A DNA stretch of 64,000 nucleotides from Octopus vulgaris (taxonomy: Eukaryota): positions 75,144,001 to 75,208,000 of the forward strand of contig OX597816.1 of assembly GCA_951406725.2 (NCBI GenBank), in the 5' to 3' direction. Of the stretch, positions 1,857 to 58,304 are shown piece by piece. Each line of letters begins with the position of its first letter. Within the stretch, counting starts at the first letter, position 1. Both the position numbers and the translations under genes were made by a program. Below the pieces are notes generated by a model, which was not told the DNA's origin, did not search any database, and saw only the letters and a program-made list of their open reading frames with translations.

Positions 1857-3052
1857 CAGGGCGCATAAGTTATCTGAGGACAGATTTATGTTTATTAAAA
1901 ACAGATATATAATAACTGATAATAAGTTTATTATAAAAAAAATGCTAAGAGGATAAAAATAAACCTCCATTTCTTCAACTTCAATAACTGCTTCTATATG
2001 ATATCTAAATCATCTACATGCTCAGATCAAGTGGTCCTGGTTCATTTTGGATATGACTCTGACTATGGTGGCTTTCAAAGAATCTTTGGTGTAATGGGTG
2101 TGTTCATTGACACTCCACACATAATAGTCCAGTGGATTGAGATCTGGTAAATTAGGAGTCCAAATTTTAGGGATTATATGTGATCATGAAAATTTTCAAT
2201 CATCTATTTCTGTGTTACTTGAGCCATGCAAGATAGTGCAGTCTTGCTGAAATACATATGATCTTCCATTGCATATACTGTCTATTCAGGGTTTGATAAC
2301 TGTTTCCAGGACCTCAATCTAGGTGGCCTTGTGGAAAGAAATAAAGAGGCATCACATGTCTTTCATTGCTGACAACCCCTAAACCATGACAGTTTCAGGA
2401 AATTTTGTATGCATAACTCTTGTAACTTTAGAAGAATCTGCATATAACCATTTTCTGTTAACTTTTTGATCTTGGTTGAAGTTTTTCTCATCTGAGAAAA
2501 ACCAAATCAAATCTTCTACTGGATTTTTCAGTTTGCTTAAAAGCCTTTTAGATCTGATATAGCAATTTTCTGTAGCTTTTTCTGATATAAATTGACTTTT
2601 CTTCATCATATAAGACTTATGTCTGATGTTTTCATGGACAACATTTCTGATTGTTCCTTCTGACACATGGAGATCTTTTGCAATTGACCTCATGGATTTT
2701 CTGGGATTGTAATCAATGGTCTGTTGAATTTGCTGGATACATTCATGTGTTCTGATGATTTTGGAGCATTTAGAATGCTTTTTACACTTTGATACAAGTG
2801 ATATGTTTCCATCTTCAGTTTCTTACTCATTAAAAACTTTGTAGACAAAAGATTTAGAAACTTTTAAAAATCAAGATATTTCCAAGTCACTATGACCAGC
2901 ATTAATAGCCATGATAACAGCATGCCTCTTCATTTCTTGAGTAAGCTGAGAGTCTGCCATTATTATTTTGTGAAACAAAGATTATATAGAGTTAGCAAAA
3001 ACTGCAGCAATGACCCCAAAAAGGTATGTCCTCAAATACCTTATGCACCCTG
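1857..3052 (-). mobile_element. Full-length decayed DD37D (maT/Bmmar1-like) transposon
   Basis: TIRs cagggcgcataagttatctgagg / cctcaaataccttatgcaccctg, TA on the left; minus-strand WFFSDEKNFNQDQKVN...HTKFPETVMV with stops and frameshifts. Confidence 0.88.
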
Positions 3053-3194: not shown

Positions 3195-3303
3195 ATGGTA
3201 GACTGGCTTCACTGCAACCTATGTTTCAACCAGCCTGGCAATGGAATTAAATTTTCTCTCACCAACTGTGGGCATGTTTACTGTGAGAAGTGTTTAAATG
3301 AAG
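3195..3303 (+). CDS. RNF212: RNF212 coding exon 1 (RING, first part)
   Basis: ATG at 3195; MVDWLHCNLCFNQPGNGIKFSLTNCGHVYCEKCLNE matches the RNF212/Zip3 C3HC4 RING pattern (W.hCN.C ... lTNCGHvyC..C); donor AAG|GTAAGC, phase 1. Confidence 0.95.
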
Positions 3304-4030: not shown

Positions 4031-4092
4031 GGACAAGAGAAAACTGCAAAATGTGCAAAGCAGTGTGCAACAGTATTCTATTGACAGGAAAG
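4031..4092 (+). CDS. RNF212: RNF212 exon 2 (end of RING)
   Basis: ttctttacag acceptor; (G)TRENCKMCKAVCNSILLTGK supplies the last CxxC; donor AAG|GTTTGA; 62 nt restores phase 0. Confidence 0.93.
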
Positions 4093-4361: not shown

Positions 4362-5622
4362 TTGGGTTGGCAACTAAGTTCTCGCCGTTTTTAAAAATTT
4401 AAATTTCTTTATAAAAAGTAACAATTAATCAATCAATAATGTATTCACCCTTTTTGTTTACAACTTCTTCCCAATGTTCGACAAGGTTTTCAATACCTCA
4501 TTGGTAGAAATCACCCGATTCCGACTCGAAAAATTGACCCAACCAAGCTCTCAATTCTGCATCAGTATTGAATGAAACTCTGCACATAGCATTTGAAAGA
4601 GGTGGAAATCTGTTGGTGACAAATCAGGAGAGTACGGCGGGTGTGGCAGCACTTCCCAGCCATGTATTTGAATGATTTCCATAGTCATATTAGCGATATG
4701 AAGGTGGGTGTTGTCATGCAGCAGAAGAACTCCATGCTGCCGATTAGGTCTTTTCTCTTGAATAGCTGTGTTGAGTCATTCCATCTGTTGAACATAGAGT
4801 TCCGCTTTGACCGTTTGGTTCTGTTCAAGCAATTCGTAATGGATAATTCCTTCCCAGTCCCACTATACGCATAACATTGTTTTATGCGGATGAAGATCTT
4901 GTTTCACGTGCGGTGTCACTTGTTTGCTGGGGCTAAGCCATTCCTTACACAGCTTCATATTGATGTACAGGCACCATTTTTCTTCGCCATTAACAATTTG
5001 GTAAAGAAATCATTGCTTGTGTCCATGAGTTGTGCGGTGACGAGCAAGCAAACCAGCGGAGATTGTGGCTCATTGATTTTTGTTGTTGTCACTTAAAGCA
5101 TGTGGAACCTATGCTCCATACTTCTGAACCTTTCCCATTGAGTGAAGATACTTCTCTATAGTAGTGTGAGAGCATTCCATTTTCTCTGCTAGTTCCCTTG
5201 TCATTTAACGAGAATTTTCATGCAAAAGTTGGTTTAATCACTCTTCATCGAACTAGGATGGCCAGAACAAGGTATGTCTTTGAGGTCAAAATTTCCATTT
5301 TTTAACTTGGCATACCAATCACAAGCGGTTTTCTCAGCTATGGCACCCTCTCCATACACAGCACAAATGTCGCGAGCAACTTTTCCGGCCTTAGAACCTT
5401 GATTAAAAGCAAAAAGAAGCAGGTGTCGAAAATACTCATTTTCCTTAACTTGACATTCCATTTTAATGATCTGAAAATAAACTAAAATTAACTAGAAAAA
5501 CACAAAATAGATTCCAAAATGATTCAAAAATAGAATTCTCGAAAAAAAATAGATTCCAAAATTTAAAAACGCAATAAATTCCAAAATTTAAAAAAACGGC
5601 GGGAACTTAGTTGCCAATAATT
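4362..5622 (-). mobile_element. Full-length decayed DD34D mariner
   Basis: TIRs ttgggttggcaactaagttctcgccg / cggcgggaacttagttgccaa; minus-strand MECQVKENEYFRHLLLFAFNQG...CDWYAKLKNGNFDLKD HTH. Confidence 0.9.
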
Positions 5623-5829: not shown

Positions 5830-6335
5830 CATGACAAGGACTAAAGTTCTCCTTAGTAAGAGAATGCACAAATTCCTCTTCCCTCTAAAAAGTGGCTTTG
5901 CTTTGTATGAAGGAAAGGAGAATGTTGGAACTCAGTAATGTGTACTCAGTGCAAGCAAGGTTTATACACAAGGCACAATGGGCTCTATGGCAGGCTGACA
6001 GAACTTCAGATGTACAAGAACAGTTATCAATAGGGCCTCTCATGGAATGACATTATTAAGGAGCTGCTTTAATAATTCAAGAGATGTAGTTGAATGTTTC
6101 TGCTATCTAGGTGATCTAATTAATGTTGGAAGTGACTGCGGGAAAACATTATTGTCAGAAAAAAAGGATAGATGAAAGAAGTTCAGAGAGTTGTTATCTA
6201 GATGGTAACAAAAGTTTCTCCTGTCATTCTAAAAGCAAACTAAGAAATATACATAAGAAATGTGATGCTGCTTGGAAGTGACACATATGCACTACATGTA
6301 GAAAATCTGAGGAGGTTGAGGAGAAATGAGGCAAA
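5830..6335 (+). mobile_element. RTE-clade LINE RT fragment
   Basis: VVECFCYLGD...KFRELL...MLLGSDTY pattern of the RTE RT C-terminus, with many stops. Confidence 0.6.
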
Positions 6336-6722: not shown

Positions 6723-7968
6723 ACATGATGTAAATAAAAAATAAGTGTGGGCTAAAAGCAGTTGGGGATTTTTATAAAAAGTTTAATCTTGTTATTTCTG
6801 ATGTTTATTCACACTGATGTAATTAGTATATTCTTCAGTAATCTTCAGCTGTCATATTTTTACACATCTACATTACATTAATCTGGGATTGAATACTGTG
6901 AAGGTGCATAACCTCATGGTTAAAGTTTTGGACTCATGATCTTAATTATGGTTTCACTTCCTAAACCAGGTAATACATTGTGTTCTTGAGTAAATCCCCT
7001 CATTTCATGTCACTCTCATCCATTCACCTGCAAATAAATACCAGTAGTAACTAGGGGTTAACACTGCAACAGATTGGCATTCTATATAAAGGGTGGGTAT
7101 TATACTCTTGGACACTTACACGCCATTGTAACTGGACTAAACTCTAGCCTAATGAGCTGGTTCATGACAGACTTTAGACCATGTATGTGTGTGTGTGTGT
7201 ATGTATACATACATACATATATATATATATATACTTCGTTTTTGTATCTGGTTTGCAAGATTCTTTATGTGAATTCATGTATTGAAACAAATTTTGTTGT
7301 GTCTAGGGAGAATCATCATGCCAATATAATTGACACACACACTGGTTCAATTCTACTCATTTACTAAATATCCGATTTTCTTTTTGTCAAAGCTCTTTTG
7401 GTGCCTTTTTGCAACCTTCTCAGTGACTATTGACTCTGTCTGTTTGTAAGTGAGATTTTCTTGTGTGTGTGAGTTTGTGTATGTATGTATGTATATATGT
7501 ATGTGTGTACCTCTGTTTCCTTTTGGGTGTATGTTTGAGTGTGTTTATGCATATGATTTTTGGTGAGTATGCACATGAGCCAGTTGTGTATGCATGTGTG
7601 TGTGTGTGGAGTATGTGTATATATGGTCATGTGTTTCTATCTTCTTGTGTGTGTGTGCTTGTATGTCCGTATTACTTATGTACCTACCTACCTATGTAAG
7701 TATATATATATATGTATATGTCTGGGGAGAGTCATTTTCTTTTTGTGCCTTATAATGTAATATACTCACCAGTAAAATTTCCACTTTTTTCTTATTTTTA
7801 TTTTCCTAAAATTTTCGTTGCGTCTTGCAACCTTTTCAATAGTTTTGACTCTAAGGCACAAAAAGAAAATGACTCTCCCCAGACACAACAGAATATGCTT
7901 CAACACACGAACTCCTATAAAGAATCTTGCAAACCAAATCCAAAAACGAAACATATATGTATGTATAT

Positions 7969-9645
7969 TATTAAATCACTAAAGTTAAAGTCTGGTCATA
8001 GAGTAACCAGTGGTTTTGCATCCATGAAAGCTGCAGCTTATCAGACTTCATACAAAAGACAAGTTTAACTCTTCACCTCTCAGAGGTGGAAAAATGTCTC
8101 AGTCAATGGGTCAAATGGCCATCAGAGGAAGAAAGTTCCAGCATTGGAGAGGATGGGTTGTCTCTGCTAGACCAATCAATATTAGGAAATAGGGATCTAT
8201 CTCGTAGTCTGCTAACAGATCATAGTGACTCTTATAAGCTTAATCAGCAAATGGAGAATCCCAACAGGTAGCGCTTGAAATGAATGCATTGTGTGAATAT
8301 TTCTTGATGAATATTCAGCGAACCAGGCTTAGTATATTCTCTAAATATTCTGGCTCACTCAACGATGCAGATCTTGCAGCACCTGCTCCCATTAGTGTAG
8401 GGGCCAGGTTGTTCTAAGATCTTCCGTTTGATATCATATGGGGTCCCTTGATCTTTGAGGTGCCACACATGACTGGCCAAGGACATGAGGAAACATTATT
8501 CTGGGACCCTGAAGGATGACCAGTGTTTGTAGAAGCATAGCTTGAAGACTGTGCTGGCTGATCCAATGTATTTACGGGCTTGGGTGATGGCTATGTTCCC
8601 ATTCCTGGGCTTGGGGGATGTTGTTGTTGTTGGGGCTGTCGTCAGGGTTGCTATCATTATGGTCTGGTGGTGCTGGCATGTCTGTTGTATTTGCAGTTAT
8701 CGGTGTGGTGGTTGTCTTTGGCGACAGGGTTGGCATTGTTGCTGGTGGTGGTGGTGTGGGTGCTGTTGTTGATAATGTAGTGTGTGGGACTGGTTACTTC
8801 ATCGGTGCCATTGGTATCAGTCTGGTCATCCTCTCTGGTTGTGGTATTGGTACTGGGGTCATTGGCATTGGAGCTGATGTTTCTGCCACTGTCGCCACCT
8901 CCAGTACTGTCATTGTTGCTGGATGGTACGTTGTTGTTATTGTGTTGCCAGACCTAGATGTCACCATAACCTCATAAATGACTCCTTCAACCTCGCATCA
9001 GCACCCCCACCCCTACTAGACAGTCATTGTACACCTTGAAGGAGCAACCTGCCTGTTCTCATGTTTTGTGGCTGTTAGTTAATATATTTTTTATGTTGGG
9101 TGCACAGCTAAAGGAGACCCTTAAGTTGTGTTTGTTGAATAAATGTCTGAATCTGTGTGTGTGTGAGAGAGGTGATTGTCTATTAACCTGAGGAATAGCC
9201 TTCCCACACAAGTCTTGACATTGAGTGAGAAAGGTAGGGCAAACTAAATGACATTTCAGTGGCGCATCCTTTTCTAGGTACTAGGGCCTAGCATGTAGGA
9301 GATACAGTCTTTAAACCCACTGGATGCCAGTGCCTTATTGTAGTAGGGAGTGACATTGTCAAAGACATCTTGACTAGAGGATAGATTTGAGATCCTTATG
9401 CTGACGCCCTTCACTAGGTTCTTGAACATGATAGGGGAGGGGGGCAGGAGGCTGTGTTAATATAGAACAGCCTCTCATTTGGCTTGTGATAGGGTCTGTG
9501 TGTACTAGAGCCCAAGCTTAGAGTAATGTATAGGAAGTCAACTATGGTGAGATTTGTCTCTATGGCGATCTTGAGTACCATGGAACCTAGGGTACTAATC
9601 ATGTCTTTTCTAAGTCTATTTAGTATGTGCCTATTGGCTCCGTTA
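7969..9645 (-). mobile_element. 5'-truncated Penelope-like element (Naiad-like): RT thumb, linker, GIY-YIG, 3' UTR
   Basis: minus-strand LKIAIETNLTIVDFL.ITL...HRPYHKPN, RVSFSCAPNIKNI, GVIYEV, KYIGSAST; family assignment from recalled PLE motifs. Confidence 0.85.
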
Positions 9646-9649
9646 CAAC

Positions 9650-10609
9650 AACAACACCAATGACCCCAGTACCAATGCCACAGCCAGAGAGGATGACCAG
9701 ACTGATACCAATGGCACCACTGAAGTAATTGGCCCCACACCCTACATTACCAGCAGCAACAATGCCAACCCTATCGCCAGAGACAGCCACCACAGCGATA
9801 ACAACCGCAGCGACAAAAGACATGCCAGCACCACCAGACCAGTGTGTCATAATGATAGCAACACTAATGGCAGCCCCAACAACAATAGCATCCCCAGGCT
9901 AGGTGCCAACCAGAGATGCACCAGGAATGTGAACATAACCATCATCCAAGCCTGTAAATACATTGGATCAGCTAGCACAGCTTTCAAGCAATGCTTCTAC
10001 AACCACTGGCCATCCTTCAGGGTCCTTGAAAGACATTTCATCATGTTCTTGGCCAGCTGTGTCTTGCACCTCAAAGATCAAGGGACCCCATATGATATCA
10101 AATGTAAAACCCTACACTAATGGGAGTAGGCACTGCAAGATCTGCATTGTTGAGCGAGCCAGAATACTTAGAGAATATACTAGGCCTGGCTCACTGAATA
10201 CTCATCAAGAAATATTCACGCAATGCATCCATTTCAAGCACTACCTGCAGCAAAACTAGGTTTCTTCATTTGGTGATTAAGCTTATAAGCGTCACTACGA
10301 TCTGTTAGCAGACCATGAGATAGATCCCTATTTCTCAATATTGGCTGGTCGAGCAGAGACAACCCATCTTCACTACCACTAGAACATTCTCTGATGGCCG
10401 TTTGATCCATTGACTGGAACATTATTTCCACCTCTGAGAGATGAAGAGTTAAACAGTTACACTTGTCTTTTGTATGGAGTCTGATGAGCTGTCCAAAATG
10501 TGTGGCTTTCATAGATGCAAAACCATTGGTTACTCTATGATCAGACTTTAACTTTAGTGATTTAATATTTTACTGCTCTATACACTAGAGTGTGCTTCTT
10601 ATTCAGATA

Positions 10610-10610
<1 letters not shown>
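9650..10610 (+). mobile_element. Inverted partner (pseudo-LTR-like) of the same PLE
   Basis: KYIGSASTAFKQCFYNH..SF and HCKICIVE...LNTHQEIFTQCIHFKH (CCHH); 9655-10567 is the reverse complement of 7969-8870. Confidence 0.85.
10477..10535 (+). ncRNA. Degenerate minimal type I hammerhead ribozyme in the PLE 3' UTR
   Basis: GAGT-CTGATGA-[stem II]-(G>A)AAA-CCATTGG-TT-ACTC; stem I GAGT/ACTC, near-palindromic stem III; mirror copy at 8001-8048 on -. Confidence 0.5.
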
Positions 10611-10652
<42 letters not shown>

Positions 10653-10658
<6 letters not shown>

Positions 10659-10957
10659 AGATCACGTGACCGACCAGACCATCAGATGTTGTTACACATC
10701 GCTGGTCACAATGCGTTCGCATTGTTTTAGCCTTCGAATGACGCCACCCCGCTGGCTAAGCGAGCAGGCCAACAGAAGAAATAGTGGGAGAAAGAGTGGT
10801 GAAAGAGTACAGTAGGGATCACCACCCCCTGCCTGAGCCTCGTGGAGCTTTTTAGGTGTTTTCGCTCAATAAACACTCACAACGCCCGGTCTGGGAATCG
10901 AAACCGCGATCCTGCGACCACGAGTCCGCTGCCCTAACCACTAGGCCATTGCGCCTC

Positions 10958-10960
<3 letters not shown>
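10653..10960 (-). mobile_element. Young tRNA-derived SINE
   Basis: minus-strand head with A box TGGCCTAGTGG and B box GGTTTCGATTCC; CpG-rich; 3' tail shared with the copy at ~49725-49985; sits between (TA)n and (CA)n tracts. Confidence 0.8.
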
Positions 10961-11001
<41 letters not shown>

Positions 11002-11009
11002 CACACACA

Positions 11010-11620
11010 CTGGGTGCAGTGAATAAATTGTCGTCTAAATTACACAAAAATGAAAATAACACAGACATCTCATTTTAACAGGTATATTTACCAAAATTAT
11101 ATAAACATATCTTGAAATACTAAAGAGTAAATTTATTCAATAAAGTTCCCATAGGCTTCAACCACGGCTTCCAGATGACTTTGGAATATCCTGCAACTCT
11201 TCTGGACAGTCGCCTTGTTTAATCTGGTAAATGCTACCATAATCCTTGTCTTCAGTTCATCTTTGGTGTTACAAGGAGTTTTGTTAGTCTCTTGCTCAAC
11301 TGCGTCCAACCCATAATAATCAAAGTGGTTGCAGTCTAGGGAGTTAGGTAACCAGATGTTAGGGAGCCATGACTGGGTTCTGCTGCTTGTGTGGCGTAGT
11401 GCTGCATCCTGTTACCAGACTTAGGGTCTTCCAGCAGCCACCCTCTTCACCCAGGGCAGCACTGCCTCCTTCAGGTACTTGATGTAGGCCTCTTGATGTG
11501 TTGAGTCTGATGTAGGCCTCTTGATGTGTTGAGTCTGCGGCCATGTGGGAAGATGAATGGAGGCATAACATCGCCATCACTAGTGATCCCTCCAAACACC
11601 ATGATGTTGACTAGATGTTT
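11010..11620 (-). mobile_element. DD37D/maT transposase C-terminal fragment
   Basis: VMVFG-like IMVFGGITSDGDVMPPFIFP and IWLPNSLDCNHFDY; internal 28-bp tandem duplication at 11481-11536. Confidence 0.75.
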
Positions 11621-12723
11621 GACACATTCATACACATATACACAAACATGTACACCTTGATTCTTCCCCCAGAATGAAGTGTTTATTACAGAGATGCTCA
11701 ATAAATAAGTGAAATAAATTAAATGAATTAGACCTATGAAAACATCTATGTGTAAAGTGGACTGGAAACTGAAAAGTTTTGAATATACAATACAAAGTAG
11801 ATACAGGCACATTACCTTTAATCCAAAACATATCTTCTTACAATTCTGTATGCCAAGTTGTCCACTGGTGTTACAAAAGGCAAAATTGTGACTGCAAGCT
11901 GATATGTATTAGCAGCAACATGGGGTCAGCACAATAAACAGGATGAAATAAATTGTTTACTCAGAATATTTTCAAAGGTTATATAAAAACCTGCAAAGAG
12001 TTTAAATGGGCCCAAGAATAAACTAAACCAAATTTATTTCTATTAGAATATTATGTGCCTGCATATTTTATAGCAGAACTGATCTGTTCATTAGTTTCGT
12101 TAAATTCTTTCTGCTGTTAGTTCAACTAAGACGCCTTCATTTACTTTCGTTACATGATTTATTTGTTGTTTCTCTCTGAGTGCAAATACATCCTGATCAG
12201 TTGCCTACGGAAATACTTTTTTCAAATCTTTTACAGCCAATATGTGTACAATATACCAATAATTGTCCTGTTGAAGCTTTCTTTAATCTCAAATGTACAT
12301 TGAGGTTAGTCTTCACCATTGACCACAAAAAACAAAATTTTTAAAAATCATTTTTGAAACATTTTTATTATCTTTTAGATGTCTTGCATTTGACATCAAT
12401 CATGAATTCAAAGAATGTCTAGTGATACCTCAGATCTTTAAAGAGTGACTAAGATTGAAAGAATTATTACTGGTGCATAGCTGCTTGGGATTAAATTCCA
12501 TAGTTTTAAATTGAGCAAGAAATACATCTCTGGTTAGTTCAGTTTAGCAAAGTAGATACTAGTACGTCAAAGAAATTAACTTACTAGTATTCTTATTCAG
12601 TGGGAAGAAAACTCAAAACTATGAAACTGTAACTTGTAAAACCACCCGCTTATAGATACAAACTAGCGTACAACTGTCATGCCTGTAATTTACATTCGTT
12701 GCTGTGGTTTTCATAATTATAAA

Positions 12724-13240
12724 TCTCTCTCTATATATGAACGGCAGTTTGTCTGTCTGTGTGTCTGTCAGGTTGTACCCTCACCCTGACCACGGCTTTC
12801 AACCGATTCTGATGAAACTTGACACACACATAGCCCAATGTCATAATTCAAAACTAACGCAGCGAAAATTTTGAAAAGTTCCCCCAGTTCTGAAAATAAT
12901 TGATAAATTCGACATGGGGTCGAGAATCTAAGCTTTTTATTTGCAACACATTTTCAGTTGTAGTTTTCGCAACTTGCAATCGATTTTCACCAAACTCATG
13001 GTGAAGCTTAATGCTACCCTAAGAAATTTAATTCTGTCGTTAGTTTTCCATGCAATACCTTACTATCAGAAAAAATCGATAAATTCATGCCATTTTGGGA
13101 AATCGCATTCAAATTCAAGATGACATATTTTCGACAATATCTTTCACAAATTGGCAGGAATTTTTTTTAAATTCACAGCGAGCATCATGTCTGCTCCAGG
13201 GGCTCTTACATACCCGGGCAATGCCGGGCTATGCTGCTAG
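12724..13240 (+). mobile_element. Non-autonomous Helitron 1
   Basis: A|TC 5' end (tctctctctatatat), subterminal hairpin cccgggcaatgccggg, 3' CTAG|T, no TSD. Confidence 0.8.
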
Positions 13241-13307
13241 TATAGTATAAATCTTTTGGTGGTAAGTTTGTGTTCACAATCATTGCTTATTTGTCATGGC
13301 TTTTCAG

Positions 13308-13382
13308 ATGAAACCTGATGTTGAGATATTTTTCGGAGATCCATTTGAACTGATAAAGAAACAAAACAGACAACTGATACAG
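13308..13382 (+). CDS. RNF212: RNF212 exon 3
   Basis: ttttcag acceptor; MKPDVEIFFGDPFELIKKQNRQLIQ; CAG|GTAATT; 75 nt, phase 0-0. Confidence 0.92.
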
Positions 13383-13441
13383 GTAATTTCTCAGGTTCTT
13401 GTAATTACTATTACTGATTTCTTCATATTCCACATGGAATA

Positions 13442-14003
13442 TCTATATATATAAAACTGTAGTTGTGTGAGTGTCTGTCCCCTTCGATTTAGATTCCTAA
13501 CTACTCCCACATTTTGCGGTGCAGTTTAACCAAAACCGGGTATCTTATAGTCGTGATTCATATTGAGCCCGTCTGGGTATTAGCGCGCGTCTACAATGAG
13601 TCTACGATTTTAAAAATAATTTAACATCATTTTTTATTCCATTTTAATGCATATTTTTTCACGTGTCGATGGTGGCGGAGTTGGCGTCCACGCTCACGCC
13701 TGCACCTGTGTTGCTTTTCCCCCTTCTTCCCTCCCTCGTGAAGCTGTGGGGAAGGGAGTGTAAGGAAATCAACGTCGTAATGCGTTGTCAAGGAGACCAG
13801 CATTCTTTTAGAACGACTTCATGGCTTGAAGACACCAAAACAGAAAATGTCTAAGATGAGTCAACGATTTAAAAAAAAATTTACCGTAATTTTTTTTCCA
13901 TTTTTAATGCATTTTTTTTGCTATTTTTTGGCTATAACTCTCTAAAAATGCTTATATAGTTATTTCCCTTACAAACCCGAGCAACGCCGGGCGATACTGC
14001 TAG
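13442..14003 (+). mobile_element. Non-autonomous Helitron 2
   Basis: A|TC 5' end (tctatatatataaaa), hairpin cccgagcaacgccggg, 3' CTAG|T; CpG-rich. Confidence 0.82.
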
Positions 14004-14182
14004 TTCTATATAATTTTTACAATATTTGATCAATATACTTATCTGGTTTTTAACATAGTTTAATGCACTGCAGCTTTGCTCTTTAATTTCCAGATAAATT
14101 TTGCTAAAAAAAAAAATGCTAAGTAGAAAATAGAAGTAAAAGTTGATGTTATATTGTATCATATGTAAAAACTATTTTGTAG

Positions 14183-14239
14183 GTCTTTGAATTTCAGAAA
14201 AATCACAGACGAAGATTTATTAACTATTTAAGAGATAAG
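14183..14239 (+). CDS. RNF212: RNF212 exon 4
   Basis: ttttgtag acceptor; VFEFQKNHRRRFINYLRDK resembles the conserved EFQ.kHr.Rl motif; ends at a GC donor, AAG|GCAAGT. Confidence 0.88.
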
Positions 14240-15889
14240 GCAAGTAATTTTTTCCATTCAGAATTTTCATTTTCTTCTTTTAATATTATTGTTATTATTA
14301 ATGTTGATGTTATTCTTATTAAAAGGAAGTGCATGACATAATCAGTAGAGCACCAGACAAAATATCTTGTGGTATTTTGTTCTGAGTTCAAATCCTGCTA
14401 TGGTTGACTTTGCCTTTCATCCTTCTAAGGTTAATAAAATAAATTTCAGTTAATAACTGGTTTTGGTATAATTGACTATTCTCTATCCCCAAATGCTGTG
14501 GCCTTCTACCATTTTCAGAAATCATTAATATTTTTAATTCTTTTATTACTAAGACAAAAGAATTCTATTGTTATTTCTATGGCAATAAATTTATTAATTT
14601 GATATCACTTGCATTTTTTTGGTCTACTTTGTTATCTGAAAACTGAAGGTCTGTATGCATAGGTTTACTCACTGCTAGAGAAGGATTGGATTTGTAGCAC
14701 TTAGAAATGTTATTGAACCATGTGGAAATTATATTCATTAATGTCATATTTAGCAACATCATACAGCATCAGATTTGCTGTGCTTTCATAGATTTATCAG
14801 TTTCTCTGATATGAAGGGCAAGGACCTGAAAAATTACATTCTTCACTCATCACATCAATTAAAGTTAACAAATTATTTTACAAACATTTCTATGGTCTAA
14901 TTGTTTCTAACCTGGCAGTGTCATTGGATTACAGATTTTATCCCTACATTTTACTCCTACATCTCAAAACTGAAAATGTAAATGTCATCTAGAGTCCCTT
15001 GGGTTTTGAGCCAACCCTAATTTTTCATTCTAATTTCATGGTGCAGAGTGGACAGCTTAGTTAACTGAGATTTAGAATTAAATGTCATGCCTTAAATTAT
15101 GAGATGCCAGCTGTGTCTCCTCAAATACCTACCCTTCTAGGCTATTCTCCTTTTTAGCTTTATAAAGGAAAAGAACCAAGATTTTCTGTCTCTTTTTGTC
15201 CTTACTATTTCACACCCTTAATTTTTTGTTGGCAATAGCCATACACTTTTTAGAAACTGACATTTTTTAAGCAAGTAGATTTAGAGATATATGTCCTTAC
15301 TGCTAACCATTCAACTTTGAAGGAAGAGTTGAAATATTCTGTTGATGGATATACCACAATAACTTAACAAGATTTAAACATTTAGTCTCCTCGGTAGTCT
15401 AGCATGTTAACCTAACAGCTGATATGTTTCAGTAGGAAAATATATTGTCTGATGCCATATTTAGAAAAGAAAAGTTGTTCGTATTGTCCTGCACAGTCAA
15501 CTCTCATCAAGCAGTTTTATGATCAAAGGTAACATTTCTCCCTCATATTTGGACATAGTCCGTCTAATGTATCATTCTTTTTAAGATGATAGGTTGTTAT
15601 TTAAAGGAGATTTGCTGGTGTTTCCTGCAGATTGTGTAGTCATGCACTCTGTTGGCTTATGTGCAAGTTATTTTATATGATTGAGAAGAGGAAGGGATAA
15701 ATCTGAGTGTCACCTTCAAAAGTATATTTGACACCTATCTCTCAATATGTTATTTGAACTGACTTCACCTCAAAGATAACAAAATTTAACATTATATAAG
15801 TCTTGAGGTAAAAAAAAAATACTGTATTGATGTGTAGTTACTATAAACGGACCATTGATTAATGGAATCTTTTTTTTTTTTTTTGCCAG

Positions 15890-16454: not shown

Positions 16455-18705
16455 GTAAATGTTACTATGATCCATATCAGTTTCTCACTGATTTTTTTGC
16501 TCATGGACTCTTTTGATTCTTATTTTACTCAGATGGATCTTCGTAGCCATTCAATGTTTAAAAAAAATCATATTGTATTTTTATAATTAAATATTATTAG
16601 GAATTGTATAGAAAAAATTGTTAAATTATTTTGTGTATTGTACAAGTATAACCATTTATTGCTGATAAATTTTAACAACAAAATGTTATATAGTTGAGAA
16701 CCACAGAACTTTACTGATAATGTAGCAGATAAAAGAAGAGCATTTTGATATGTTGAAAATGTCATCTGATATTATCATTATCATTTCTTTATTTATTCCT
16801 TGTTGTTATGACTGCACTGAGGCTGAATCAGTCCTGACTACATCAAAATCATAATCCTTTGGTAATGTCAAACCAAGTGAAATCATAGTTGTGACCAGTG
16901 ACAGTGACTTGTAAAAAGCACCTGTGCTGGTGATATGTAAGAGGCAGCCACTACACTCTTGAGGTGATTGGCATTAAGAAAGGCACCCAGCCTTAGAAAA
17001 CAAACCAAATCAGACTGGAGCCTGGTACAGCTCTCTGGCTTACCAATTCCACTCAAACCATCTAACCCATGCCAGCATGGAAAACGGATGCTAAATAATA
17101 ATGATGATGATGATATAGAAGAAGTATATATTCTGATACAGAATTAATTTATATTTGTTGCCAGATTTTCATTCTGTTGTAAGCCTTCAGTTATGACTGA
17201 AGAGGGGTGACTGAAGGAATCATTCTACCAGTGTTCTTAACACGGTCGTCTTCCCTTTAATGGAGAGTATATTATACTTCGATTTGGGATTCAACATTAT
17301 GCTTTACTCATCTTCTTTTCTTCCCTTCTTCTGTCATTTTTCTCTTCTTTCTTATCATTCTCTCTGCACTCCTCATACCTTATCTCATTGTATTGACTAT
17401 ATATACATTAACTCTCATAAGATATTCTGTTATATCCTGTGGATAGCAGTTAATATTAAAATATACCTGCAAAGGCCTGTTTGTAATGATATTTGCTATG
17501 ACAGTCTACTTGTAACATTACCAACACAGATAAAACTACTTTGTGTAACAGTCACTGCTGATCTTTTTATGACTTCTAATGGATTAGTTACAAGAAGCAA
17601 AGAAGCATAGCCATCACTATAAGTTAGTATGACTTTTGCTAATTGTTTTAGGTTCTTTTGTAGTCACCTTGCTCTTTCCACTTTAAACCCATCAAGACGT
17701 CAAGGATACTACAGGTGGAAGAGGGAGCTGCATCTGCACTTAGCTGGCATTTAGTTTCATCTGAGTGGATGGAGTTAAGGATACAACATGCCGTCCAGTC
17801 CAGAAATCAAATTCAGACCTTATGATTGCGAGGCCAATACCTTCACTAGGCCAAGCACCTTAGTTACACAACCCTACAACACAAAAAAAAAAAAAAAAAG
17901 AGAGATAGTGTGTATAAATTGATTAACTCTAGATAAGAATATATAGTTTGGCTTACCCAGAAATAATTTTAAGTTCCCTGACATTCAAAAGATTATGGTT
18001 CTGACTTAATCAAAATTCCCTGAACTTCAGTGCTACCAGATCTGCACATACTATCTTGATGTTCTAATGATAAATGCTTGGCAATACATGTGTGAAAAAA
18101 TTTATTTTAAAACTAGCTTAAAGGCCACCCTATCAGGTGGCTTTTAAGCTAGCTCCTGTGGAGGGCTCTTCAATGGGTCTTGGGCCCAACAATGACACTT
18201 CATGCATTGAGTACATATTTATTAAACTTTACATTGAGTACATATTTATTAAACTTGAACAATATTTTTCAAGCAATGAACAATTTTCATCAAAACAATA
18301 ATATAATTTGTTGACATGGAACTTACTGGAAAGCTGTATGATAAACAACATTTTTTGTCTTCCCATTCGGGGTCAGTACAAATAGCTTGTTCCCATTCCC
18401 TGCCCTTGAACAACCAACATATAGCTGGCCATAGGCAACAATAAACATATCCTACCTTCTTAAAAATGATATTAAGACTTTGTGTACCATTAGATGCATG
18501 ACACTTAGAAAAAAAAGAAAAAGATAAGTCAGGGTGATCATTGCTGGAATGCCTTTTTGATCAAGAGGTCTACTCAATCAGAGCCAACTTGAGACTAAGC
18601 AGTAACAGCTGATGAAATCTATCATAGAAAAATAGTTTAAGGACTTCATTGATTTCATTACTATTTCCTAGAATCATCTCAAATGTTTTTGTTTTATATT
18701 TTCAG

Positions 18706-21231: not shown

Positions 21232-24200
21232 TATATGATTGATTTTTAGCGTAACCTTTTGTTGTTTGATACTTGTAGAGAAAGTTTGGGCCAAGAGTTC
21301 CAGTGAGTTGCAATTCTGAAGAAGGAAAATTGAGAAAAATATTTAGTATAAGTTTTGGGAATGCGACAAGAAATCAAATGGCTGGTGTATCAGATGGCCT
21401 TCAGTGAAAGTTGTCAAAGTTTACTAATTCAAAGTGCTAGGAACTATTCTAGTAATGACAGAAGAGACAGAAAAGGGCACAGTATTCTGTAGCATGTTAA
21501 TATAAAACATTTGTACATTGATATTGGGCAACAAACTGTAGGGGTTGAAATATAGCTGATTTATAGCTGATTGAATTAACCACAGAACATACTGGGTTAT
21601 CATCCTCTTGAAAGTTGAAGTCAATCTTGATGCAATTTCAACTCAAGATGTAAAGAGGGGAAGCTAAATACTACAAACTAAATACTAACATTCTACCGGT
21701 TTTGCTAATTTGGCAACTGATAATCAATAATTGTTTCTAATTTAAGCATAAAACCAGCCAGCAGTTTTGAGAGGGGGAGGGCCTCATTGATACCAGTACT
21801 TGATCGGTGCTTTATTTTATTGACATTGGGCAGGATTTGAGCTCAAATAGCCTGATCAATAATGAAATTATTCAGGGTTAGTAATGATAGATAGCATCAA
21901 TAAAACTTTATTAAGAATATATGTCTAATTTTAGAAAGTGTGTAGTAAGACATAAATTTATTGTTTTCGCTGTAGCTTGAATTAGTTAATTGAGACAGAC
22001 CCTGACCTGTTAAGGTTAGCATTGCAAAAGTTTCAAACATCAACTTCAGCACAAGTCTGATGCGCATTCAAAAGTAAAAGTTAAGTCAGTTACAGCAAAG
22101 ACGTCAAGCTGTCCACTACCTATTTTCCAACTGCTCTCTCTCTCTGTCTCAATAGAGCATGGAAATATAACTTGGTGTTATTTTTGTAATTATGGCTATT
22201 AAGCCAAAGTAGTTTTAACAACTTTGAGACAATTTGCCTCTTTTCTTCACTTGACATTCGAATCAAGCTGTTAAGAAGCTTATATTGTTTTTACCCTGTT
22301 GCTGAATTTGACATCAGACAGCAAGAATTATATCTCCAGGATGACTCTCACACAATTGTATCGTGTAATTTATATCAGCTCAAACTTGAAACTTGTAAAA
22401 TATTACTGAGTGCAACTGTATTTATTCATGTCTTACAAAACTTATTCCTCCAGACTGAACATCTGCAATCTGTTGTTTTGAACACACTTCATTTTCTCCT
22501 GTGTTTTTACGTTTGTTCACCATTGTTCAGAAACAATAATAAAATTTGCATTTATTTGAACACTTATTTGATGCCTTCTGATCCTTATCGTTGCTTTTAT
22601 GTACAAACTGCCATCTACATTTTGATATTGAGTTTACATGCTAAACTCTTTTGCTAAAAGTGTGAGGCAAATATAAGAAGTATGAAGTTGTATGTTAGTG
22701 AAATATGACCAGTTTTTGAAATGTGATGTTGTATGTCAGTGAAACATAAGCAGTGATTACAAGATATTTACAGCTATTGGAGCAGAATAATTTTAAAGTA
22801 GTCTGTTAATTTATGAGAGGATTTGAATGGATGTAAGATAAGAAAAGGTTTGTGCATCAAAGGCATTGGCTGAATGTATGAAAGTGAGTTGGTTTGGTAG
22901 AGACATATGAAGGAAAAGGATTATATACATATTGAATGAAAAATTGCTGTGTTAGACATAGAGATGTATCTGTTGTTGGAAAAGACTGAGAATGACCTGA
23001 GAGGAATTTAATGAAATTAGCATGGGCAATGTAGTCATTCAATACACGATATTTATGAGAATGGAAACTGAAAGATGATAAAGATGTCAATAATGAAATG
23101 CAAATGGCTTTTTTATTATGTGGTAACATTATTCTCAGCTGATAAATACTATAGAAAAAAAACTGTCTTGTCAACAGAGCAGTGATCAAAAAATGGTCAG
23201 TTAGTTTCACAGCAGGTTTTCATAAAAAGTTTTATCTCCTAGCTGACCAAAGCCTTGTGAATGAATTTATTTCATAAAAACTGAAAGAAGCCTGTTTTGT
23301 TTGTTTGTTTGTGTGTGTGTGTGTGTGTGTGCACATGTGCATGCATGTTTGCTTATATTTACGCTCTACAAAAGTCACTAGCTTGCTTGCTTTGTGCCTT
23401 GTGAAAGAGATCCCTTAATTGGAAAGCAGGTAAGGGTTAGTAACAAGAAAGGCATCTAGCTGCAAAACAATGTTTCAATGATATATTCATTTAATCTATG
23501 TTAGCATGGAAAAACAGATGTAAAATGAATGAGTAAACAGTTATATGCATTTTCTCTCCGCCACAATAAGTCCATTCTACAAGAAGTTGTAAAGGAAATA
23601 ATAGGTATTTCTTACTTTGGCATTAGGCTGTAAATTGTGGGGCAGAGATGTAAAGAATTTAATAAATTGCAGTACTAGACTGGTATTTATTTATAGACCC
23701 TGAAAAATGGAAGGCTAAATCAACCTAGGTGAGATTTGTTCTGGTATGTAAATAGATGTAACTAAATGTCACTTCCTCATCATCATCCTTTATGTCTGTT
23801 TTCCACACTGGTATGGGTTGGATGGTTTCACCAGAGTTGGCAAGCAGGAGTGCTGCACTAGGTTCCAGTCTGATTTGGCTTGGTTTCTACAGCTGGATGC
23901 CCTTCCTAATGCCAACCACTTTAAAGAGTGTGCTGGGTACTTTTTACATGGCACTGGTATGGCAGCTTTTATGAGGTGTCAGAATGATTGCTATTACATG
24001 GTGCCAGTATGGGTGCCTTTTATGTGTCACTGGTACAGGTGCTTTTTATGTGACACCAGCACAGAGCTTTTGCAAGCCAATTCTCTTCAGCAAGGGGAGT
24101 GGCATTAACACTTCTGCTGTGGAGGAAGGGTCACATTGTTATTAATCTAATGGTCTACCATTCCTGCTATGCACTGCTCTCTATAAAAGAAATATTGATA

Positions 24201-24623: not shown

Positions 24624-25226
24624 GTGAGTACATTTTATCATGTATACATAACCACATCTGATATTCAAAACTTAGAGACTTTTCTACTTCATAACCTACA
24701 TAGGATGGGACTCTTAATTTTGACATGTTCTCTTTAAATATTTAGCATTAGTTGCAATACTTAAGAAAAATTTACTTCATTAATTTCACCACTGTAATAG
24801 CCAATTTACATATACAAATTTGCATTTGTCTATACATACATACATCAAAGGCATTGGCTGAATGTATGAAAGTGAGTTGATTTGGTAGAGGCATATGAAA
24901 GAAAAGGATTATAGACATATTGAATGAAAAATTGCTGTGTTAGACATAGAATTGTATCTGTTGTTGGAAAAGACTGAGAATGACTTCCTTCTCCAGCCTA
25001 CATGTTTACTTCTTCTTTCTCTAGCCTACATGTTTACTTTCTGTTGGAATCTCTACACATTTGTTTGACCTGTTAAAAATAGTACACACTAACACTCCAA
25101 ACATTCTCCTTGATCCTTTTCACACTTCCAAACTCATCCTCTACCAGACCAAACTTATCTCTGCATCTATCAAATCATCCTAATGCTAGTTATTGCGACT
25201 GCTCATCACACATTTTCATACTACAC

Positions 25227-25939
25227 TAGTGGTTCTCAACCATTTTTTTTTTTTGCCTATGGACCCTTTTTGACTACTACTTGTTCTGGTGGACCTCAAT
25301 GTTTAAAAACTAGTTTTATAGATACATCATTCAGCATCTACTTTCCATGCTGGTATGGGTTAGACAGTTTGATTGGTACTGGTAAGCTGGGGAGCTGTAC
25401 CAAGTTCCAATCTGATTTGGCATGGTTTCTACAGTTTGATGCCCTTCCTAATGCCAACCACTCCAAGAGTGTAATGGTTGCTTTTTACATGCCACCAGCA
25501 TGGATGCTTTTATGTGCCACCAACATAGGTGCCAGTTATGTGACACCAGCCATGACTATAATTTCACTTGGCTTGATGAATCTTCTCAAGCACAGCATAT
25601 AGCCAAAGGTCCTGATCATGTCATCGCCTCCATGAGGTTCAATGTTTAAAGACCATGCTTCACCACCATACTTCTTTCAAAATTCCTATTTCATTTTTCA
25701 TATGTTCATTTGTATAGGTTTGTAATAGGATTTTCTGAGAAAACGTGTTTCAGTTGCCAGAAACATGTTAAAATGTGTAAAAACCTTAGAGAAAGAGACT
25801 TAGCTGTCTCTTGCAATAAATACATCCAAAACAAAATCTTTTTCTTGGATCTTTAAAATACTACTGCGAATCCTCAATTTACTATTTTGTCTGCGTAGAC
25901 CCCACAAAATTTTATATGGACCCCAGTTGAGAACCACTT
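25227..25939. mobile_element. hAT-type MITE interrupted by a SINE
   Basis: termini agtggttctcaacc / gttgagaaccact; no matching 8-bp TSD; RTE-tail SINE inside at ~25335-25660. Confidence 0.5.
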
Positions 25940-29411: not shown

Positions 29412-30197
29412 CAAGAGAGATGACTGTGCTGGTATGGTCATGTGGTGAGAATAGATGAGGATAGCTGTGTGAAGAAGTGTCACACCCTAGCGGTTGAGGG
29501 AACCTGTGGAAGAGGTAGACCCAAGAAGACCTGGGATGAGGTGGTGAGGCATGACCTTCGAACATTAGGCCTCACCAAGGCAATGACTAGTGATTGACAC
29601 CTTTGGAAATATGCTGTACTTGAGAAGACCCGGCAAGCCAAGTAACCAGCCCACTTATGTGTACCTTTCCTTCATTGGACACTAAACTCTGCTTGTGAAG
29701 TCCTATTGAGGCAAGTGAAATCGAAATCAAATTTGATGACAGCACCGCATGATTGGCATCCGTGCCAGTGGAGCGCTAAGAGCACCATCTGAATGTGATA
29801 GTTGCCAGGGCCACTGACTGGCTCCTGTGCTCGTGGCACATAAAAAGCACCATTCGAGCATGATTGTTACCAGTGTTGCCTTACTGGCACATGAAAAACA
29901 ACATTCGAGCGAGGTCATTGCCAGTGCTGCTGGACTGGCTCCTGTGCAGGTGGCAACTAAAAAAAATACCATTTCAGCATGGCTGTTGCCAGTACCACCT
30001 GACTGGCCCTCATGCTGGTGGCACGTAAAAGCATCCACTATACTCTCTGAGTGGTTGGCGTTAGGAAGGGCATCCAGCTGTAGAAACTCTGCCAGATTAG
30101 ATAGGAGCCTGGTGCAGCCATCTGGCTCACCAGTCCTCAGTCAAACCGTCCAACACATGCCAGCATGGAAAGCGGACATTAAATGATGATGATGATG
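29412..30197 (+). mobile_element. 5'-truncated RTE LINE with complete repeat-containing 3' UTR and (GAT)n tail
   Basis: WYGHVVRIDEDSCVKKC...GRGRPKKTWDEVV, stop near 29645, then the tail found in many dispersed copies across the window. Confidence 0.85.
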
Positions 30198-39069: not shown

Positions 39070-39372
39070 ATCATCATCATCGTTTAACGTCCGTTTTCCG
39101 TGCTAGCACGGGCTGTACAGTTTGACCGGGGTCTGGGAAGCCAGGAGGCTGCACCAGGCTCCAGTCTGATCTGGCAGTGTTTCTACAGGTGGATGACCTT
39201 CCTAACGCCAACCACTCTGTGAGTGTAGTGGGTGCTTTTTTCGTGCCGCCAGCACAGGTGCCAGGGGGGCTCGCAGTGGCAACAATCGGTTGGTGCTTTT
39301 TACGTGCCACCGGCACAGAAGCCAGTCAAGGCAGCGCTGCAATCGGCCATGTTCGGATGGTGCTTTTTACGT
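39070..39372 (-). mobile_element. Young RTE-tail repeat copy
   Basis: (CAT)n-cgtttaacgtccg... reverse of the 29.7-30.2 kb tail. Confidence 0.85.
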
Positions 39373-39461
39373 GCTGAAAGGAAGCAACAGAAAGTAACAA
39401 CCACACTCTTACCCATGCGTAGAGTGGGTCACCTTCAGCTAGTATATATATATATTTATAT

Positions 39462-48713: not shown

Positions 48714-49448
48714 GTAAGTATTTCTTTTCTCACTTTTTTTTTTCTAGGCCATTTGTAACTTCTAGCCTGCTATCTCTAGAGTTTACTGTAATGTCCTAGT
48801 CTGGATTAGATTGTTCTTTCCCAACACATCATTTATGAGGGACTTACTCTGTATTTCTTCTTCCTATTAAATTGGCCTGAACACTTTAACATTTAAACAG
48901 GTCATATGTGGCCCAAATATTCTACCTGCTTTATGTTCAAACTGGCCAGATTCAGCCTCTCACACCTACCCTACAATGTCATTCTAAAAGCAAACAATGG
49001 CATCATTGAAATCTCAAATCTATGAGATAATGCATGATTAATTCAAAGCAGTATGAATAAATAAGCATTAAATTTGACAGAGTACCCTGAATGCTAAAAG
49101 GTCAAGAGATCTATATATATTTTTAATTTTTTTGTCTTGTAACTATTTCTTCCTGTTTACATGGTTGAGGCAGCTTTATGAATTTTTTTCCAATTTACAC
49201 CTTGTTGAAATGATTACTGTTGTAACTGGACACCACAAACCATTCACTCACAATGTAGGAGTAGAACTTGTCAGCCAGGTAGGTTGTGGACAGCTGAATT
49301 GTGGGTCATGCTCAGGGATACACACTAAATTTGGATTTAGTAAGGTTTGAACTTCTAACTTTGTGGGTAATAATCTAGTACTTTAACTTCATGACTTGTC
49401 TTATTAATCAAATTTTCACTGAAGCCAAAAATATTTGATTTTTTACAG

Positions 49449-49657
49449 CTTACAATGATGAATCCTCCAGTGACAGTTTATGTTCTTCCAGTGATGAAAG
49501 TGACTCAAGCTTTGAACCCCAACAAAAGGTCCTTTCAAACACTGCTGATTTAACTATCAAGGAGTCTAAGGATTCCTCTAAAATTAAGCCAACTTCTAAA
49601 GCTAACACAAAAATTTCCACTCCAAGTGCTTCCAAAAAAATGTCTGAGGAAGATATG
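49449..49657 (+). CDS. ORC2: ORC2 exon 7 (acidic/Ser-rich)
   Basis: ttttttacag acceptor; open for 69 codons, YNDESSSDSLCSSSDESDS...KKMSEEDM; ATG|GTATGT. Confidence 0.85.
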
Positions 49658-50179
49658 GTATGTATGTTAATGCATGAAGTATATGTTATCTTTGTATATT
49701 ACATTATATATTATCGTATATGTGAAAGCATCTGACCTAGAGGTTGCACTCAAAATCACAAGATCGTGGGTTCGATTCCTGGACCAGGTGATGCATTGTG
49801 TTCTTGAGAAAAACACTTCACTTCACATTGCTCTGGTCTGCTCAGATACAAATGGATAAGCCCACAACAGAATAGCCTTCTAATTAGGAGGGATGTTGGT
49901 CTGCTTGAAGCTAAAACGATGCGCAGAGCATTGTGGTCAGCGATGTATAACAACATCTGATAGCCTGATTGATACTGTGATACCATGATTATCCTACATG
50001 CCGTCATATGAAAGAACAGGCTCTTAAGATAAGTTCTAAGAATTCGTACGTGCTATACTTGCTGCATAAGATTATAACAAACTTCACACTTATCACAAGG
50101 CCATAATTAATAAATTCTGCTAATTTGTTTTTGAGGCAAACTAGCTGATGTTTCTACATTTTAACAAAGTACAAAAAGT

Positions 50180-50350
50180 CGCAGGTGTGGCTGTGTGTTA
50201 AGAAGTTTGCTTCCCAACCACATGACTCAGGGTTCAGTCCCACTATCTGGTACCTTGAGCAAGTGTCTCGTTTTATAGTCACAGGCCAATCAAAACCTTG
50301 TGAGTGGATTTGGTAGATGAAAACTGAAAGGAGACTGTTGTGTGTGTGTC
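50180..50350 (+). mobile_element. tRNA-head CORE-like SINE; further copies at ~27630-27790, 47175-47330, 50845-51130, 54385-54530, and a 3' part at 35105-35340 on -
   Basis: gtggctgtgtg.taagaag.ttgcttcccaaccacatg...ggttcagtcccact...gagcaagtgtct recurs, followed by (TG)n. Confidence 0.75.
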
Positions 50351-51215
50351 TGTATGTATATGTTGGTATGTACCTATGTGTGTATTAAGTGAATCTCTTG
50401 CATTTTATTTCATGTGCCACCAATTTTGTTTTTCTTATAGCATAGCCAATATATATCGTGTTGAACAGAACTAAACCACTTGCTTGGTATCCTGTTTAGT
50501 TGCCTAAAAATAAAGTTAGTAAAAAAAGACAATACTGATTTTCACTTAAAAATCATTGAAAAAACAGTTGCTGCCTTCATTAGTTTCTGAGATATCACAT
50601 TAGAAACTCAGTGAACCAATCAGCCAAACAAATGAAAAAAATAAAAGTTTTTCTTTCTTTTCTTTTTTTTTTTTGCTTAAGTATGCAAAATGACTGAATA
50701 TTTAAAGAGTGGCATAATAAATGTTAGCTTTGTAAAGTAAGAAATTGTGTTAATAACATTTGAAATACATTTTTCTTTAGGTTTCTCTGAGCCAGTATAA
50801 CAATAAAAAAGATAAACATGGTAAATAACAATCACTTTAACAGCAGGTGCAGGCGTAACTGTGGTTAAGAAACTTGTGGTCTTGGGTTCAGTCCCACTAC
50901 ATGGCATCTTGAGCAAGTGCCTTCTACTATAGTCCCAGGCCAACTGAGCTTTGTGCTTGTGAGTAGATTTGGTTGGCGGAAACTGAGAGAAGACTGTTGT
51001 GTGTGTGTGTGTGTAACCAACCAACCAACCAACCAACTAATAGTTTGGCAAAAATTACTGATACAATAACTACCAGGATTTAAAAATAAGTACTGGGGTC
51101 GATGTTTGACTACACCCTTCAAAGTAGTGCCAAAAACTAGTGGAAGTTAAAAAAAAAAACTGTAAACGTGTCTTTTATGTTCATGTGACATTGCTTAAAA
51201 CTTGTCTTCTAACAG

Positions 51216-51421
51216 CCATCTATTGTAGAACAGTATTTTGAAGTACATTCTACAAAAGGACTTACATCAGACCGAACACTGTCTCGACTGGATATGCCAC
51301 GAATTGATTTAGACGATTTACAGAAACTTCTAAAAAATGTCTCGGGAAACCATTGCAAGGAGTACAAACAGCTTTTTAACAAATATTCTGAATATTTTGA
51401 CAAATGGTTATTTTTACTCAG
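51216..51421 (+). CDS. ORC2: ORC2 exon 8 (start of conserved ORC2 domain)
   Basis: PSIVEQYFEVHSTKGLTSDRTLSRL...YFDKWLFLL; VEqYF..H...lTSDRTL is diagnostic of ORC2; AG|GTAATC. Confidence 0.96.
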
Positions 51422-52880: not shown

Positions 52881-53013
52881 TTATGGATTCAATATTATGG
52901 TATATGGATTTGGCTCCAAGAAATCATTATTAGAAAAATTCTTCTCTGAAAAACTCAATGGATATGATCATGTTATTGTCAATGGCTTCTTCCCAAGTCT
53001 GTCAATAAAACAC
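52881..53013 (+). CDS. ORC2: ORC2 exon 9
   Basis: YGFNIMVYGFGSKKSLLEKF...HVIVNGFFPSLSIKH (GFN..YG.GSK and VNGFFP motifs); CAC|GTATGT. Confidence 0.97.
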
Positions 53014-53812: not shown

Positions 53813-53906
53813 ATTTTAGATTCAATAACAGAAGAGATTCTTAATGAAGAAGGAACATTTAAAACCCTGTTGGACCAGTGTGAATTTATTAAGAAGTCTC
53901 TAGAAG
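53813..53906 (+). CDS. ORC2: ORC2 exon 10
   Basis: ILDSITEEILNEEGTFKTLLDQCEFIKKSLE; G|GTCAGT. Confidence 0.93.
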
Positions 53907-58271: not shown

Positions 58272-58304
58272 GTAACTTTCTCGTAAAACTATTTTGTATG
58301 TATG

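Follow-up and report, generated by a model that had tools for sequence, protein, structure and literature searches.

The window, that is, the whole 64,000-nt stretch of Octopus vulgaris DNA analysed here and to which all positions refer unless another locus is named, contains an RNF212-like gene that spans from 3195 to ~30350 on the + strand. It matches the O. vulgaris chromosome record OX597816.1 with 100% identity. The first four coding exons of this gene, when translated, are 100% identical across 101 residues to P0001, a protein of 274 residues whose annotation reads RING finger 212B-like in O. vulgaris and probable E3 SUMO-protein ligase RNF212 in O. sinensis. All four exons lie in + orientation. 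Exon 1 (3195-3303), a 100% match to this protein, supplies the start codon and the first half of the RING, and exon 2 (4031-4092), which also matches it, supplies the second half. Exon 3 (13308-13382) comprises 75 nt in phase 0/0, encodes MKPDVEIFFGDPFELIKKQNRQLIQ without any in-frame stop and is followed by a GT donor at 13383. Exon 4 (14183-14239) encodes VFEFQKNHRRRFINYLRDK and is followed by a GC donor at 14240; the sequence at the end of this exon (14239-14245) reads AAG and then GCAAGT, which makes the donor of intron 4 GC-AG and not GT-AG. The search for exons took its lead from a tblastn comparison with human RNF212, exons 1 and 2 being then read directly from the sequence, and the identity of the gene rests on the protein matches and on Pfam. 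The latter recognised a zf-RING_5 domain at residues 6-46 (E = 1.6e-09, above the curated cut-off), and residues 1-101 share 57-65% identity with the RNF212 proteins of chiton, amphioxus and abalone; the coiled coil and the Ser-rich tail of P0001 were judged by eye only. Given the 100% match to annotated RNF212/RNF212B-like proteins and the presence of zf-RING_5, the host gene is a member of the RNF212/RNF212B family, in agreement with the initial annotation, which had called it RNF212.

Exon 3 shows identical DNA in the three Octopus species compared (O. vulgaris, O. sinensis and O. bimaculoides). Since an exon with the same boundaries was found in cuttlefish (6055-6129 of locus L004), and since the peptide that it encodes occurs in every annotated isoform of the three Octopus species and also in Argonauta, exon 3 is ancestral and not transposon-borne. 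Delivery of this exon by a Helitron was likewise considered and ruled out, as the exon and its flanks are present in cuttlefish and at the empty sites described below. One annotated isoform of O. sinensis (P0013, 217 aa, encoded at locus L002) begins with the methionine encoded at the start of exon 3, which implies that its product lacks the RING and that intron 2 contains an alternative first exon or promoter.

Several other features were observed in the window. About 5.2 kb of intron 2 (~7155-12350), including a GC-richer stretch, has no counterpart in O. bimaculoides and probably constitutes another lineage-specific mobile element. This region also includes an inverted duplication of ~900 nt, in which 9657-10573 is ~80% identical to a segment at roughly 7950-8850. 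Mariner/Tc1-type transposase motifs (e.g. HPPYSPDLSPTDFHLF) appear in the open frames 2382-2822(-), 4554-4775(-), 11136-11411(-), 58770-58997(+) and 63011-63567(+), which look like decayed Tc1-mariner copies in and around the gene. The open-frame motif CTRLQSDLAxFLQLDALPNANH, detected at nine or more positions spread over both strands, with examples at 16886-17143(-), 23752-24105(+), 25114-25599(+), 29730-30140(-), 39126-39374(+), 52113-52373(+) and 55815-56066(-), marks an abundant interspersed repeat, probably an octopus SINE. Downstream of the RNF212-like gene, at ~49400-58300 (+), exon-like frames resemble origin recognition complex subunit 2 (e.g. GFNIMVYGFGSKKSLLEKF), a likeness noted by eye only.

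Structure and family of the elements flanking exon 3

Exon 3 lies between two elements, designated here El1 and El2. El1 (12724-13240, +) is 517 nt long, starts with TC (12724-12725) after A12723 and ends with CTAG (13237-13240) before T13241, whereas El2 (13442-14003, +) measures 562 nt, starts with TC (13442-13443) after A13441 and ends with CTAG (14000-14003) before T14004. Between them remain 67 nt of intron 2 (13241-13307, +), exon 3 and 59 nt from the donor side of intron 3 (13383-13441, +), the whole arrangement from the start of El1 to the end of El2 (12724-14003) amounting to 1280 nt. Direct reading of the sequence bore out the tight sandwich that the initial annotation had described, with every coordinate that it had assigned to the elements, the exon and the gaps, as well as the common orientation of El1 and El2, which is also that of the gene.

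The 18-nt 3' end GCCGGGCTATGCTGCTAG has two matches in the window when up to three mismatches are allowed (0.01 expected), and these are only the ends of El1 and El2, the last 18 nt of El1 differing from the end of El2 by two mismatches. The similarity between both elements covers ~38 nt at the 3' end and, more loosely, ~45 nt at the 5' end, and their interiors are unrelated. An inverted-repeat search across 12000-14800 detected no terminal inverted repeats joining the ends of El1 or of El2, the open frames of both elements show no sign of a captured host gene, and no exact match was found in the protein collection for ten ORFs across the elements and their junctions. The shared 3' terminus likewise had no match in JGI metagenome contigs or viral contigs. 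Within El2, a 71-nt direct repeat (13589-13659 and 13849-13919, 82-85% identical) brackets a GC-rich core, and the number of repeat units varies among three copies of the family.

Relatives of El2 were sought with its 63-codon open frame in 1.8 billion protein representatives, and one true relative (P0015) was obtained; six long repetitive proteins (WD40-like and others) were discarded as chance matches, in which only repeated low-information stretches match. P0015 is located on a 1066-nt metagenome contig from ENA (ERZ22666216, hereafter L005), which contains a complete copy of the El2 family (465-981) as well as a second, partial one that retains the 3' part and ends at 234. The complete copy is 94.6% identical to El2 over the 424-nt 5' part and 96% over the 79-nt 3' part; the similarity is bounded exactly by TC and CTAG, beyond which lie unrelated flanks, A to the left and T to the right. 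Both copies on L005 (1-981) are co-oriented, 230 nt apart and inserted at A|T sites. L005 is probably octopus DNA, since the spacer at 354-458 has a weak match to an interspersed repeat found at each of the three Octopus loci. A follow-up search with P0015 returned P0015 itself only. For El1, neither the exact look-up of its ORFs in the protein collection nor a search with its open frames, in which the seven frames were mixed as an 'alignment' in order to take words from all of them, yielded any other copy; its assignment to a family is consequently based on the termini and the empty site.

Both elements show the TC and CTRR ends of canonical Helitrons (Helitron1 type), with boundaries that are independently fixed by the empty sites of both and, in the case of El2, by the family alignment. 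The canonical insertion between A and T without target-site duplication was observed at both sites of the window, and the copies on L005 are also flanked by A and T; El2 belongs to a multi-copy family with kept termini and unrelated flanks, represented by the two further copies on L005. These data support the assignment of El1 and El2 to the Helitrons, as the initial annotation had proposed, on the basis of TC...CTAG termini delimited by A|T empty sites. The 3' hairpins, which had been described as kept in both elements, stood the analysis in part. Each element does contain a short hairpin whose end lies 12 nt from the terminus, CCCGGGCAATGCCGGG at 13213-13228 (+) in El1 and CCCGAGCAACGCCGGG at 13976-13991 (+) in El2, with a bulged 5-6 bp GC stem that the L005 copies largely retain; but their folding is not more stable than that of shuffled sequence (z = -0.11 for El1 and -0.67 for El2), with no compensatory changes available, so that the hairpins are consistent with a Helitron and constitute weak evidence alone.

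Two other classes were considered. A Helentron or Helitron2, which inserts at T|T and has asymmetric terminal inverted repeats, was rejected in view of the A|T targets and the lack of such repeats, and a SINE or other retroposon in view of the absence of tRNA, of any Rfam match near threshold, of a tail and of target duplication. The closest resemblance is to non-autonomous Helitrons of the HelibatN type, mobilised by the Helibat/Helraiser RepHel, which share with El1 and El2 the TC and CTAG ends, a hairpin ~12 nt from the 3' end, insertion at A|T in AT-rich DNA without duplication, the lack of coding capacity and common termini around unrelated interiors. Unlike HelibatN, the octopus elements have a shorter and bulged hairpin, no gene fragment was recognised in either of them and their RepHel partner is presumed. 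The main text of the HELIANO paper contains no octopus data.

Empty sites, age and order of insertion

The protein led to the orthologous loci in O. sinensis (L002) and O. bimaculoides (L003), one assembly being used per species. L002 is 99-99.8% identical to the window on both sides of El1 and the alignment jumps from 12724 to 13241, so that El1 is exactly absent; over 33 kb aligned at 99% identity, no large indel other than this element separates O. vulgaris from O. sinensis. Its empty site reads ATAAA|TATAG in both L002 and L003 (ATAAA|TATAGTA in O. sinensis), without target duplication. El2 is present in O. sinensis, with 99.3% identity to the O. vulgaris copy. In L003 both elements are absent, and the empty site of El2, equally exact and without duplication, reads GGAATA|TTCTATATAATT (GGAATA|TTCTATA). 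The ambiguity at each site is limited to 1 nt, a T, which is unavoidable when an element beginning with T is inserted at A|T. At the empty site of El2, BLAST matches overlapped by 9 nt; a target duplication was considered and ruled out, since the overlap proved to be microhomology on base-by-base reading. The first 8 nt of El2 (13442-13449), TCTATATA, recur in its 3' flank (14005-14012), and because the flank copy pre-exists at the O. bimaculoides empty site, this repeat corresponds to target microhomology and not to duplication. The A|T insertion sites, named in the initial annotation as a test of Helitron identity, were thus recovered from the empty sites of the sister species and from the alignment of the El2 family. 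The 20 nt flanking each target on both sides have an AT content of 70-90%, in accordance with the preference of Helraiser for AT dinucleotides and AT-rich flanks (PMC4778049).

Since O. sinensis has El2 without El1 and O. bimaculoides has neither, El2 is the older element and El1 is specific to the O. vulgaris lineage. From these comparisons, El2 appears to have entered the gene after the split from O. bimaculoides, which has been dated to 13.3-33.5 million years ago (PMC13282606), and El1 later, in the O. vulgaris lineage alone. The pattern of presence and absence across species agrees with the youth that had been attributed to both elements, as El1 is missing from O. sinensis and El2 from O. 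bimaculoides, and the contrary outcome, that of ancient and fixed insertions, does not hold for El1.

CpG content points in the same direction. With 16 CpGs in El1 and 26 in El2, the observed/expected ratios are 0.82 and 1.18, respectively, as compared with 0.28 in the window as a whole, and this excess lends support to a recent origin of both elements. Between O. vulgaris and O. sinensis, El2 differs at four positions, 3/4 of them CpG transitions, a fact that fits a CpG-rich newcomer starting to decay in a methylated gene body. Helitrons constitute 1.02% of the O. vulgaris genome, distributed in 84 families, 8 of which, with 178 insertions, are regarded as recently active (PMC13282606); that Helitrons have moved recently in O. 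vulgaris was thus already known. That catalogue (Bonar et al. 2026, PMC13282606) concerns the same species, assembly (xcOctVulg1.2) and order of transposon and agrees with our analysis in that Helitrons have moved recently; its text gives counts, and its recently active set averages ~4.3 kb per insertion, probably of autonomous size, whereas El1 and El2 are ~0.5 kb long.

The exon 3 core and its splice signals

The intron 2 remnant contains two candidate branch points (A13276 and A13289), picked by eye against the yUnAy consensus, followed by a pyrimidine tract and the acceptor AG, and both the candidate branch points and the tract are situated at least 32 nt from El1. The 67-nt and 59-nt remnants are identical to O. 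sinensis and show one mismatch each to O. bimaculoides. Accordingly, the 201-nt core (13241-13441) that they form together with exon 3 is identical in O. sinensis and has two mismatches to O. bimaculoides, i.e. it is 99% conserved, in comparison with 92-95% identity in the neighbouring intron. Within the 126 intronic bases of the core, 2 mismatches were counted versus ~6-10 expected (P ~0.02-0.05, according to our own Poisson estimate on few sites). On this comparison, the 201-nt block looks constrained, with both insertions located at its edges. The branch point and the polypyrimidine tract had been described in the initial annotation as squeezed into 67 nt; they are indeed confined to this stretch, but the confinement would be harmless, given that the remnant is identical to the uninterrupted sequence of O. 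sinensis.

Origin and potential of the arrangement

Our data document the Helitron structure of both elements, their insertion polarity, the order of the two events, the lack of target duplication and the multi-copy nature of the El2 family. Very probably, the locus results from two non-autonomous canonical Helitrons that inserted independently and at different times into A|T sites around exon 3. Both elements combine one kind of terminal sequence with unrelated interiors, lie at AT-rich A|T sites and would have been mobilised in trans by an octopus RepHel transposase. El2 would have arrived first, in an intron 3 of ~238 nt, once O. bimaculoides had diverged and before the split between O. vulgaris and O. 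sinensis, followed by El1, only in the O. vulgaris lineage, 201 nt upstream of the 5' end of El2. The tight sandwich would then most plausibly reflect the AT-rich target preference of the family, possibly clustering, and selection against insertions nearer to the splice signals, a reading suggested by the fact that both elements sit just outside the more constrained 201-nt block; selection may thereby have contributed to setting their distances to the exon.

Instead of recent insertions, the elements could be conceived as ancestral sequences precisely deleted in the sister species, and for El2, which is missing from O. bimaculoides only, parsimony alone leaves the direction of the change undecided. 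Nevertheless, El1 is missing from O. sinensis and from the outgroup O. bimaculoides, which makes gain the parsimonious solution; moreover, both gaps match TC...CTAG to the base and leave an intact A|T with no footprint, a precision that random deletion would not produce twice, and the high CpG content of the elements within a CpG-depleted gene body speaks against a long residence. Ancestral presence followed by deletion hence seems extremely unlikely. A different question is whether El1 and/or El2 alter the gene, be it through exon 3 splicing, cryptic splice sites or promoters, or RNF212 dosage, in which case El1 would set O. vulgaris functionally apart from O. sinensis. In mammals, RNF212 is dosage-sensitive for crossover number. 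Both elements lie in sense orientation less than 70 nt from splice sites, El2 has two GT[AG]AG motifs on the sense strand (13467 and 13760), and its insertion expanded intron 3 from ~238 nt to the present 800 nt. However, the splice signals and the 201-nt core appear unchanged, neither El1 nor El2 contains AATAAA/ATTAAA or a pyrimidine-tract acceptor in sense orientation, exon 3 is kept in the O. vulgaris gene models, as judged from the annotation, and El2 outlasted a speciation event without loss of the exon. An effect of this kind on the gene is in our opinion improbable, and we infer that El1 and El2 are tolerated passengers, neutral for splicing.

The arrangement could also be regarded as a working composite, in which RepHel would read through the terminator of El1, stop at that of El2 and copy exon 3, together with its two splice sites, to new loci, whether such transduction has already happened or the locus is poised for it. 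The initial annotation had advanced this idea, and the geometry is the right one: both elements are co-oriented, an intact 5' TC lies upstream and the downstream terminator has its last 38 nt close to those of El1. In addition, as a 75-nt, phase 0/0, stop-free cassette, exon 3 would remain in frame if spliced elsewhere. Work on Helraiser has established that the 5' end is essential, that the 3' hairpin acts as terminator and that read-through ends at an alternative terminator; ~11.7% of the events with the intact element take along 3' flanking DNA, and among natural copies in bats the CTAG end has been bypassed (PMC4778049). The lineage has also experienced recent Helitron activity, as evidenced by El1 itself and by the published catalogue (PMC13282606). 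Against these considerations, our analysis provides no evidence for any transduced copy: the exon 3 peptide was found only in RNF212 orthologues among 5.8 billion proteins, which is a weak negative in view of the length filter, to comply with which the query was the 101-residue N-terminus padded with X. Furthermore, the terminator of El1 is intact, and most events should end there, and both the transposase and its specificity for the ends of El1 and El2 are only presumed. We consequently hold a working composite to be very unlikely, and the composite may be viewed as a hypothesis, a potential only, albeit a mechanistically sound one.

Read-through capture at the 3' end, demonstrated for Helraiser and inferred in maize and bat, has in common with the octopus locus a 5' end, a host segment after it and, further downstream, a co-oriented terminator. 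In the known cases, however, the captured segment is found inside mobilised copies at new loci, whereas here there is a possible donor configuration only, and the downstream terminator is a genuine Helitron end instead of one arisen de novo. The one-ended rolling-circle transposition of bacterial IS91/ISCR elements follows the same logic, a missed terminator carrying adjacent DNA (PMC4778049), but these elements are prokaryotic and have no helicase fusion, so that the analogy is merely mechanistic.

Close co-oriented pairs were observed at both loci sampled for the El2 family, the window and L005, which gives a hint of clustering. Neighbouring Helitron insertions near one another have been reported in bats, and no local hopping was found for Helraiser (PMC4778049). 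Exons flanked as tightly as this one would be expected by chance at 0.08-0.28 per genome, assuming uniform insertion of 28.6 Mb of Helitron in 2.80 Gb and 2x10^5 exons; with this expectation, the exon-flanking configuration is uncommon yet within chance. Conversely, the pair might not be coincidental and could arise from homing near earlier copies and composite spread to other loci of a spliceable, in-frame 25-codon cassette from a crossover-control gene, or El1 could alter RNF212 dosage and hence recombination. The option of homing or composite spread gains a hint from L005, which likewise shows two co-oriented copies, there 230 nt apart; all in all, a non-coincidental pair has, in our estimation, very little chance of being the correct explanation, and independent insertion is preferred.

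As for the significance of these observations, the locus offers the donor configuration that read-through capture predicts, namely a symmetric, splice-competent exon of a meiotic crossover regulator with a Helitron 5' end on one side and a Helitron terminator downstream. The discovery of a mobilised copy would supply the product of a capture event alongside its donor; without it, the locus would represent an ordinary intronic pair of insertions, tolerated by selection for having missed the splice signals. In either case, it documents well, in a natural setting, that Helitrons have been active very recently in a cephalopod, with base-precise empty sites in two sister species and with its events ordered.
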